A stretch of 63,064 nucleotides of DNA, counting the filler, from Olpidium bornovanus S191 (Eukaryota; Fungi; Olpidiomycota), in the NCBI GenBank assembly GCA_017911155.1. It is 26 parts of 26 records of this genome, joined end to end, with 100 filler letters (N's around TTAATTAATTAA, not from the genome) between each part and the next. Parts side by side here need not be neighbours in the genome. Positions count along the whole stretch, not along the records: positions 38,758 to 40,423 come from JAEFCI010003714.1; 25 more parts are not named here. The stretch is one strand, 5' to 3'. Positions 38,610 to 41,735 of this stretch are shown in pieces. The first letter of the stretch is position 1. Every line of letters begins with the position of its first letter. The position numbers and the translations under genes are program-made. A model generated the notes under the pieces. The model saw only the letters and a list, made by a program, of their open reading frames with translations, ran no database searches and was not told where the DNA came from.

Positions 38610-38758
38610 CCCCCCCCCCCCCCCCCCCCCCGCCCCCGCCACAACCACACCGCCCGCNNNNNNNNNNNNNNNNNNNNNNNNNNNNNNNNNNNNNNNNNNN
38701 NTTAATTAATTAANNNNNNNNNNNNNNNNNNNNNNNNNNNNNNNNNNNNNNNNNNNNC

Positions 38759-39951
38759 ATGACCGCCGTTCACGATCGAGCGTCAGTCGCCGTCGCGGGC
38801 GTCGTCACGGCAAGTCAGTCCGCGGCCGGAAAGAATTTAGAGGACAAGGCAGCATCGTCGCAAGTCGCTGGTAAGTCTTTGTCGTGTTCTTTTTTTTTTC
38901 CTTTTTTTTTGTTACTTTTGTTCCCCGTCCACTTTGTTTGATGCCGGTGGAATAATCCCACTGCTTTGCGATGCCCGCCGCCCTCACTATTTTTGCGTGC
39001 GACGGCGGAAAAAAATATAAAAAAATAGCAGTGTCTAAAACTGATTTGATACGGACAAGCAGAGGTAAGGGGGGAGGGCGGTGGGGGGAGGGGGTTTCGA
39101 TGGAGTTACTCGCGCGCGTTGCACCCCTTGGCTGCGCGGTTCCCGTTTCCGACTGTTTCTTGCTTACGCGGCTTTCTTGGCTTTATGCCGCCGTATTCCT
39201 TAGGCGCGTTGGAAAAACCCGTGATGCCCGAAATCCGCTCGAGCAAAGAGGCGACCGCGCCGCAAGGGCCAACAGGTTGGGCAGTGCTTTTCCACCGTGA
39301 AAAACCGTCTGCGGGCGCATCACGGAACAGGCGAAACGTGTCCCGCCGAAAATAAAAGGCCGATACGTTCTTTTTTCCTTCCACCCCCTCTCCCTCCCCC
39401 GCTTTCCCCGGCCCACCTCTTCCCCTGTCCCCGGTGGATTCGCGGAAAAAGGCGGCGGCACGGAAAAACCGAAACCCGTCGCCTTTGAGATATCGGTGGA
39501 AGAGCTCAAGCCGCAGAAGACGAGCACGCCCAAGTCGTCCTTGCCGAAGCTCGAACTGTCCGAGGAGGAGATCAAAGCGAAGCTCTCGTTGTCGGAGGAG
39601 CGCTGGCGGGACCTCGAGAAGGAGAAGGAGACCCGCCGCTCGGCGCGCTCTCTGGCGGCGGCGGCGGCGGCGGCGGAGCGGAGCGGGTCCGCAAAGTCTA
39701 ACCCGGAGGAGCTCAAGAGCAAGCTGGTAGAGAAGGAGGCCAAGGTCGAGCAGAACCGCCAGCGCGAGCTCGCCAAGCGGCAAAGCGAGCAGCAGAAGCG
39801 GGACCACCGCGCGAAGGAGGTCCAGAGGCGAAAGCAGGAGCTGCAGAAGAACCGCGAGGAGAAGCAGGAAGGCGGCGAGAAGGAGGAAGATCTCGACCTT
39901 TCCTGGGGCGGGGAGGCGAAAGACGACGACAGCGACGCGCGGTCGCAATAA
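38759..39951 (+). CDS. Stathmin-like domain protein; N-terminus possibly truncated
   Basis: Exons 38759-38870, 39204-39275 and 39452-39951 with matching phases. AFEI, LSEEEIKAKL..SEER, KL..K.....NR and D....EV...K occur at stathmin spacing. Confidence 0.78.
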
Positions 39952-41735
39952 CACCCAGAAAAATCAAAGGCCGAGGCACGCGGCATTCCGTGATTCACGT
40001 ATTAGATGCGTTTTCCGGCCTAACTTGCCATAACCCACACCCCCCCCCCCCTCTCCCACTTTGCCGACGACGTACACGAGTCTCCCTTCCGATACTCCGT
40101 GGAGACTCTACAGTCTTCCAAATCCCGCTCCGCAGCACCATAATGCTTATACCCTTTTCATTTTATTTTATTTACTTTTTTTTTTTTTTTTTTTTCGGCC
40201 ACGCACTCAGCGTCCGCGCAGAACATACCGCTATTGTCGCCGGAAGGCTCTTTCCATGTGCAACACTGGCTCATTTTTTCGGTTGCGGCGAACGTGCCAG
40301 AGCCATGAGTCAAGTGACCTGGTAACTTTTGTGCTCGCTCACTCTTCCTTTAGCAAAAACGACAGGACACGCGACAACCAAACACAAATCCGTCGAGGGC
40401 GTCCAGGCGCGGAGCCCGGCTGANNNNNNNNNNNNNNNNNNNNNNNNNNNNNNNNNNNNNNNNNNNNTTAATTAATTAANNNNNNNNNNNNNNNNNNNNN
40501 NNNNNNNNNNNNNNNNNNNNNNNGCATGCGCATATTTATCCGCGTGCTTCTGCTCGCAAGAGGGCTTTTCCATCCACCACACACCCAGAACCGCGTGTTC
40601 TCAGCAGGCTGTGCAAAACCCGTCATAACACTAACTCGCGTTGGCGTCCTTTCCTTTGATGCGTTTCGCAATCCGACGACTCTGATCGGCGTGGACACAT
40701 CCGCCTGACTTTTTTTTTGGCCCCGACCTTTTCGCTCCGCCGCCGGTCGCCCCGAATGTTCCAGGGGGGCCGTACGTCGACTTTTTCTGTGCTCCAAAAA
40801 TCTTTTCTGGAACTTGGTACCGGGGAATGAAATTCTCAGACTTTTCTCGTCCTCAAAAGCGACCGCGGTTTTCGTAATCCCGGCGATGGGGTTCCCTGGG
40901 AACAGCGGCCCTGCGAAATGTCCACTCGTTGCACCCCCGGGTTGGTTTTTTGTACGGGAATCCTTAACCCCCCGGCGCCCCCCCCCCCCCCCCCCATCTG
41001 CGAAGTCCGCTGTACCCACGACACCCCAAAAGGAACTCAATGATATAGCAATCCCAGAATTTATCATTGACGCAACCGAGATCCAAAAAATTTGATTTGT
41101 AGTTTGTTATTCGGTAAAAGGTAGATGTGGTATTATTTGTGTTTTAAGAGCAATAAACGTGTATTAAAATAATGCGTTGTTGTATTTGGATCGGGTGAAA
41201 GAGAGGAAAAAGGGTAAGGGCGTTATGATTTGGTTTATTCGATTGGGATTTTTGAGGTGATAAAAGGGTGATCTAGTTTAATTTGGAGTTCTTAATATTC
41301 TTTTGTAAATAAAAAAACCAAAAAATCAGGTGGGTTTGTTTGGGGAAAAGGACTGTTATGTAAGTATATAAGTACATTGGTGTGTTCTGCGGCGAAGGGA
41401 TGGGGTTGAGAGAGATGAGAGTGAGGATGGGAGAGGAGAGGGGAGCGAGTTTGGGAGAGGGGAGGGGAGCGGAGTGAGGGGAGAGGAGTAAGGTGAGGGA
41501 TGAGGATGGGGAGGGGTGGGTGTGCGTGGGTGTGCGGTGGGAGGGGTGTGCGGGGGTGGGAGGAGGGGGGGGGACTATCTGACAAACCTTGGGGCGGGAT
41601 CCTACGTGAGGTGCGGGGGTGGGAGCGCGCTGCCCNNNNNNNNNNNNNNNNNNNNNNNNNNNNNNNNNNNNNNNNNNNNTTAATTAATTAANNNNNNNNN
41701 NNNNNNNNNNNNNNNNNNNNNNNNNNNNNNNNNNN

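Follow-up and report, generated by a model that had tools for sequence, protein, structure and literature searches.

We propose that the window, that is, the whole 63,064-nt stretch of Olpidium bornovanus DNA analysed here, carries in its piece at positions 38758-40423 most of an expressed gene for a divergent, lipid-anchored stathmin resembling STMND1. Taken as a whole, and with its putative tubulin-binding mechanism, this reading is likely, in our judgement of the sequence comparisons. A membrane-anchored stathmin of the STMND1 kind is the best reading since most full-length relatives of the protein start with MGC[GA]xSK, which is near the STMND1 motif. The architecture of these relatives consists of a Met-Gly-Cys motif with predicted myristoylation of Gly2 and palmitoylation of Cys3, a disordered extension of ~50-200 residues and a C-terminal stathmin-like domain, and within this domain an AFEI segment and an SLPKL linker lead into ~100 helical residues. 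The family is found in all three phyla of zoosporic fungi and was probably inherited vertically.

The piece holds one gene, located on the plus strand. Assembled contigs of two RNA libraries, aligned to the piece, showed that this gene is spliced, with four exons in the piece between 38759 and 39951; the evidence for splicing comes only from the assembled RNA contigs of X2 and X5, and the raw-read runs X20 and X23 had no reads on the piece. The part of exon 1 that is visible in the piece (38759-38870; 37 codons plus 1 nt, with the contigs of X2 and X5 covering 38758-38869) has a reading frame that is open up to the piece edge, and it is part of the disordered N-terminal extension. It is followed by a micro-exon of 36 nt (39029-39064), which encodes AVSKTDLIRTSR, is included in both contigs (X2 and X5), keeps the frame and is flanked by the introns 38871-39028 and 39065-39203. 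The next exon of 72 nt (39204-39275; contig joints 39064/39204 and 39275/39452) contains the family motif LEKPVMPEI (39209-39235), and the last coding exon (39452-39951) encodes, as read from the RNA contigs and their translation, the whole stathmin-like domain and an acidic tail and ends in the stop codon TAA (39949-39951). All three introns are of the GT..AG type. Joined from the ATG at 38759, the exons form an open frame of 720 nt, or 239 codons, up to this stop. The span 38759-39951 given in the initial annotation comprises four exons instead of one ORF, and its start may not be the true one.

The ATG at 38759 is in frame, lies one base inside the piece edge and falls opposite Met25 of the relative P0001 in a global alignment. 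Since the X2 contig continues for 364 nt to the 5' side of the piece edge (38758), this ATG is probably internal and the N-terminus of the protein is missing from the piece. Two metagenome scans for the upstream part of the gene, one with DNA words and one with protein, gave no match, and the full-length Olpidium protein itself was absent from the collections that were searched with P0001 or by exact look-up. At the other end, the X2 contig adds a 3' UTR of at least 197 nt (39952-40148, plus strand) and stops before a T run near 40170-40195, and a contig that ends at 40148, just before this last T run, does not fix the poly(A) site. The sequence between the gene and the end of the piece (40200-40423) showed neither RNA contig coverage nor a convincing ORF. 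Several homopolymer tracts are present, namely T runs at 38881-38910 in intron 1, a C run at 40041-40053 in the 3' UTR and ~24 T at about 40170-40195. The micro-exon 39029-39064 is situated between two AT-rich or low-complexity introns and is invisible to plain ORF reading. Two long ORFs on the minus strand, 39106-39954 (282 aa) and 39183-39998 (271 aa), were rejected as candidate genes because the splice joints place the transcript on the plus strand. Such antisense ORFs are by-products of the purine-rich, stop-poor coding strand, and the GC content over the last coding exon was ~58-71% in sliding windows of 150 nt.

By translation, the last exon encodes ...KPVAFEISVEELKPQKTSTPKSSLPKLELSEEEIKAKLSLSEERWRDLEKE...linker...NPEELKSKLVEKEAKVEQNRQRELAKRQSEQQKRDHRAKEVQRRKQEL...LSWGGE..., and the domain comprises residues 83-215 of a spliced product of at least ~240 aa. 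The domain contains 18% Glu and 14% Lys and is also rich in Arg. It opens with the motif VAFEI (39478-39492, plus strand), the counterpart of the N-terminal segment AFE(L/V)I of stathmin and RB3, and the Pfam Stathmin alignment of the protein also begins here, at profile position 15-16. Across 40 family members the F and I of AFEI are invariant and the E is nearly so, while the following residue, a nearly invariant P in most members, is S in the Olpidium protein. The SLPKL linker, whose L and P are nearly invariant in the family, is present as well; together with the start of the first helix it forms the stretch SLPKLELSEEEIKAKLSLSEERWRDLEKE (39541-39624, plus strand), which aligned to RB3 in the HMMER comparisons and where L30, K43 and W51 are nearly invariant in the family.

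AlphaFold2 predicted a disordered N-terminal part and two long helices with mean pLDDT values mostly above 85 per 10-residue block. Helix 1 covers residues 37-78 of the exon product (39562-39687; block means 82-96 over most of its length and 76 in the last block) and helix 2 residues 84-140 (39703-39873, PEELKSKLVEKEAKVEQNRQRELAKRQSEQQKRDHRAKEVQRRKQEL...; block means 87-98). Helix 2 also aligns to RB3 and is the best-conserved part of the protein, with R102 and R126 invariant in the family. Between them, DSSP assigned a helix break on the model at SAKSN, directly before Pro84 (39688-39702), so that both helices together span 104 residues with an interruption of five. Neither PDB nor AlphaFold/Swiss-Prot yielded a meaningful Foldseek match to the model, which is not surprising for a long helix on its own. 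Downstream of helix 2, the motif LSWGGE (39898-39915, plus strand) lies outside the Pfam Stathmin match; it is conserved in most family members and, as a feature of the fungal family, is not part of the animal stathmin domain.

HMMER aligned the last exon to solved stathmin-4 (RB3) and stathmin chains with single-residue gaps only, and SLP, S.EEI..KL..[SA]EER, KL, NR, D, EV and K fell into the same columns in the Olpidium protein and RB3. The translation and these printed alignments confirmed that the motifs named in the initial annotation are where it had placed them, and the equal distance of 55 residues from EER to NR that it had described was recovered against RB3. Relative to the stathmin/RB3 domain (PF00836; 1SA0, 3RYC, 4I4T), the protein is colinear from AFE(L/V)I via the SLP linker through ~95-100 helical residues, it has the motifs S.EEI..KL..AEER, KL....E...ENR and D.HA.EV in common with it and its two halves are equally far apart, but identity is only ~20-25%. 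Among Pfam families Stathmin was the top match, colinear over positions 15-135 of the 136 in the profile, with scores (12.4 bits and E 0.16 for the exon-4 protein, 13.8 bits and E 0.057 for the domain only) below the gathering score of 24.7 bits. Likewise, stathmins ranked first when the Olpidium protein was compared with the PDB, at non-significant E values of about 2-5. Since the Olpidium protein alone is not significant, the case for homology rests on its relatives.

Among these, P0020 of Gorgonomyces haynaldii, which phmmer linked to the Olpidium protein with E 2.5e-7, reached 26.6 bits (E 6.5e-6) over Stathmin positions 15-135 of 136, above the cut-off, and P0006 scored 23.5 bits. The Stathmin profile search suggested in the initial annotation thus left the Olpidium protein below 24.7 bits and brought a relative above it. 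Stathmin was matched at E <= 0.1 by 14 of 40 members when only their domains were used, and all matches with given coordinates follow one register and cover almost the whole profile. A profile built from the domain only (A3) was compared with 177,635 distinct PDB sequences, among which coiled coils and spectrin repeats are numerous; its 19 top-ranking distinct sequences were all stathmin or stathmin-4 (E 2.7e-4 to 5.6e-3), and the next chain was unrelated (E 1.4). The full-length family profile A1 also found only stathmin in the PDB. In the ESM Atlas, the best three neighbours of the Olpidium protein, and 33 in all among those listed, were Stathmin clusters (score 0.92, 203 of 256 features), and the full-length relative P0001 had 'Stathmin domain containing 1' as a neighbour (0.90, 196 features). 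Together with the lipidation motif of the relatives, these family-level Pfam matches, the stathmin-specific PDB profile search and the Atlas neighbours back the homology to stathmin that was first proposed from the motifs, and we regard it, on the sequence comparisons, as very likely for the family of the Olpidium protein. The top Atlas neighbour of P0001 was a cluster of molluscan hypothetical proteins (306 aa) annotated with both Stathmin and DUF4619 (PF15398), so that the label DUF4619 may refer to a portion of proteins of the STMND1 type.

The competing view that the gene encodes an unrelated charged helical protein of this lineage only, which resembles stathmin through a Glu-, Lys- and Arg-rich helix, draws on several of the same data. 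Besides the non-significant scores of the Olpidium protein itself, Spectrin-repeat matches were of similar strength in the single-sequence scans, and shuffled proteins reached 0.9 in the Atlas in 4-10% of cases. Internal duplication, with one copy per tubulin dimer, is typical of stathmin domains. In the helix of the Olpidium protein hhalign detected no such duplication, aligning the first half to the second over 16 columns in another register (probability 3%, E 0.014), which also fits a merely compositional resemblance. HMMER scores are, however, already corrected for composition, and the Stathmin matches include the non-helical N-terminal motifs. The identical register in all members with match coordinates given, the one member above the curated Pfam cut-off and the restriction of the family profile to stathmins among the PDB sequences likewise speak against composition, as do the MGC lipidation motif and the overall architecture, which are common to the family and STMND1. 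We consider chance likeness of this kind very improbable. The Spectrin-repeat family was rejected separately: its sub-threshold matches, about as frequent as those of Stathmin (13 of 40 members, best 9e-5), are partial, covering less than half of the Spectrin profile, and differ in register among members, and no spectrin chain appeared in the PDB profile search.

A phmmer search against 1.84 billion representatives returned 38 proteins at E <= 1e-3 (best 2.2e-28), with no animal or choanoflagellate proteins among them, and two further searches enlarged the collection of relatives to 61 sequences; a word-index protein search with the last exon found no match. Every named relative is a 'hypothetical protein' of zoosporic fungi, and a precomputed Pfam domain was present on none of the relatives. 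Chytridiomycota contribute members from many orders (Chytriomyces, Obelidium, Rhizoclosmatium, Batrachochytrium salamandrivorans, Spizellomyces, Rhizophlyctis, Cladochytrium, Polychytrium, Synchytrium, Lobulomycetales and others), Blastocladiomycota are represented by Sorochytrium and Blastocladiella, and Neocallimastigomycota by Piromyces. The searches run yielded no named relatives from Dikarya, Mucoromycota, animals or protists, and within their scope the family is restricted to flagellated fungi. The occurrence of named relatives in three zoosporic phyla only backs the earlier proposal of a stathmin retained in flagellated fungi. In a maximum-likelihood tree the sequences clustered roughly by fungal order, and since the tree roughly follows these orders, vertical descent fits. 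The Olpidium protein paired with the transcript-derived P0001 (support 100/98), outside the Blastocladiomycota pair.

In relatives 250 to 440 aa long, the AFEI motif lies at positions 45-205. About 42 of the 61 start with MGC[GA]xSK, including members from Blastocladiomycota and Neocallimastigomycota, and those that do not are mostly partial or doubtful gene models. Further family motifs are L.KPV.P(S/E)I, with the family consensus L..V.PSI and LEKPVMPEI identical in P0001, then KxVAFEIPLD and SLPKLxLSxxDIxAKLANTEARWKDLE. A basic, Ser/Thr- and Pro-containing linker separates these from DPxxLKxRLLEKEAxAxxNRxRExxKLQxKLAKQEEHARxVQERKRxLG, and many chytrid members carry the tail DSGKGS...SRSGSGRS.

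In STMN2-4 palmitoylation occurs on a different N-terminal domain, and STMN1 is a soluble protein. The closest architectural match to the fungal family is STMND1, the human member of the most ancient stathmin clade, a protein of ~280 aa whose conserved MGCGPSQ start carries both myristoyl and palmitoyl groups, as experiments showed (Deng et al. 2024, Mol Biol Cell 35:ar82; PMC11238091). Its N-terminal extension precedes a C-terminal stathmin-like domain with an embedded nuclear localisation signal, and the protein shuttles to the nucleus, binds tubulin and localises to motile cilia; the authors of that study see its role in sensing tubulin, not in sequestering it in bulk (Deng et al. 2024; PMC11238091). 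In the initial annotation, 'sequestering' is the least secure term. The fungal family resembles it in the MGCGASK consensus, the long disordered extension, the C-terminal stathmin-like domain and the total length (~250-400 aa), and, as for STMND1 and the choanoflagellate stathmins, its occurrence tracks cilia or flagella. It is nevertheless too distant from STMND1 for single-sequence searches, and LEKPVxPxI, EARWKDLE, LSWGGE and DSGKGS..SRSGSGRS are its own. As regards the Olpidium copy, whose N-terminus is outside the piece, the MGC start is known from the relatives only; we infer that this copy, too, begins with Met-Gly-Cys and would be lipidated.

According to the mechanism that we propose, the lipids would tether the protein to the plasma or flagellar membrane, and its stathmin-like domain would bind soluble alpha/beta-tubulin, AFEI capping alpha-tubulin and the helices lying along the dimer or dimers. 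Since the membrane-tethered domain is proposed to bind soluble tubulin, the protein could buffer or report free tubulin at sites of zoospore flagellum assembly or retraction. Tubulin binding, its stoichiometry, the localisation and the flagellar role are thus putative properties of the Olpidium protein. A wider and rather speculative extension would be that the stathmin of the opisthokont ancestor already carried myristoyl and palmitoyl groups and sensed tubulin at the flagellum. Fungi would have kept it in every lineage whose zoospores are flagellated and lost it when the flagellum was lost; in chytrids it might help to control the length of the flagellum, or to retract it rapidly and dispose of tubulin after encystment.

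The linker between the helices sets the fungal family apart from its animal counterparts. The helix of STMN1-4 is continuous. In place of the one continuous helix seen in RB3, the fungal proteins have a Pro-containing, length-variable linker, with a predicted break (39688-39702 in the Olpidium gene) inside it. The distance from the invariant Trp to the invariant Arg of the NR/RR dipeptide is 51 residues in the Olpidium protein and 44 in its closest relative, and the family as a whole covers 39 to 81. Pro occurs in the linker of all members; the linker is basic in most of them, with a cluster R..RRRG.KP.L, and Ala/Ser-rich instead in the Olpidium protein. Since this distance varies so widely, even in the closest relative, the spacing match to animal stathmin is, as judged from the aligned sequences, best regarded as a coincidence of the Olpidium lineage, and the earlier argument that fixed spacing speaks for homology fails. 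A run of (GCG)7 (39655-39675, within 39646-39686 flagged as repeat) encodes Ala7 in the region of predicted helix 1 and the linker, and this lineage-specific filler helps to produce the stathmin-like spacing of 51 residues. Since the linker is Pro-bearing and variable in length and a helix break is predicted, the model of one rigid helix on two tubulin dimers at a fixed register may not apply to the fungal family. Its helical halves may instead bind while the linker forms a loop between them, or the complex may have another stoichiometry.

The same features bear on the possibility that the protein is a true stathmin homologue in a fungal family whose main mode of action is no longer through tubulin. 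The strongly conserved features peculiar to the fungal proteins, namely the invariant Trp in EARWKDLE, the basic linker with its prolines, LSWGGE and the Ser/Gly-rich tail, would then be needed for a different partner, or for signalling in the nucleus or at the membrane. In favour of this, some of the best-conserved columns belong to motifs of the family that animal stathmins lack, the variable linker and helix break depart from the canonical continuous helix along two dimers, and STMND1 itself has an NLS within its domain and moves in and out of the nucleus (PMC11238091). AFEI, SLP and both helices, which align to RB3, are conserved too, however, and STMND1, as the closest architectural match, binds tubulin (PMC11238091). 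We therefore consider a main function away from tubulin unlikely, less so than a purely compositional likeness, and prefer the reading of a tubulin-binding, membrane-anchored stathmin.

Deng et al. (2024; PMC11238091) list stathmins 'from Fungi, Ciliophora and Choanoflagellatea' and do not describe them; in their main text no fungal species is named and no fungal feature described. The fungal entries are probably the family described here, or a few of its members that pass InterPro thresholds, P0020 of Gorgonomyces being such a case. The observation itself is confirmed, but a stathmin in a fungus, presented in the initial annotation as a surprise, is less of one since fungal stathmins had already been mentioned (PMC11238091). 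Our literature search found no paper joining stathmin with chytrids, no experiment on any fungal member and, on STMND1 biology, only Deng et al. (2024). Fungal stathmin-domain proteins are therefore on record, while the description of the family is apparently new, in particular its family-wide MGC motif, its spread over three zoosporic phyla and its variable linker.

The fungal proteins add a well-defined family with an STMND1-type lipid anchor that is confined to fungi making flagella. Work on stathmins has dealt almost exclusively with animals, and there is still debate about their basic role in the cell. Since a family with an STMND1-like anchor is confined to flagellated fungi, it provides independent phyletic support for the idea that the oldest stathmins act at cilia. 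Spizellomyces punctatus, which has a member and is transformable (PMC7213984), offers a tractable non-animal test system. About 60 database proteins labelled 'hypothetical' can now be named.

Some of the database entries deserve a comment as gene models. P0019 of Spizellomyces punctatus ('hypothetical protein, variant') has 191 aa and starts with MPPIQ, not MGC, and this model is probably truncated or an alternative isoform. The members P0020, P0022, P0024, P0035, P0038 and P0058 carry an insert VG.(Q/E)(L/I)D.LL... right after the invariant Trp-Lys. Judged by its sequence, the insert resembles an intron that the gene models have failed to remove, and it would then mark a conserved intron position that is absent from the Olpidium gene.
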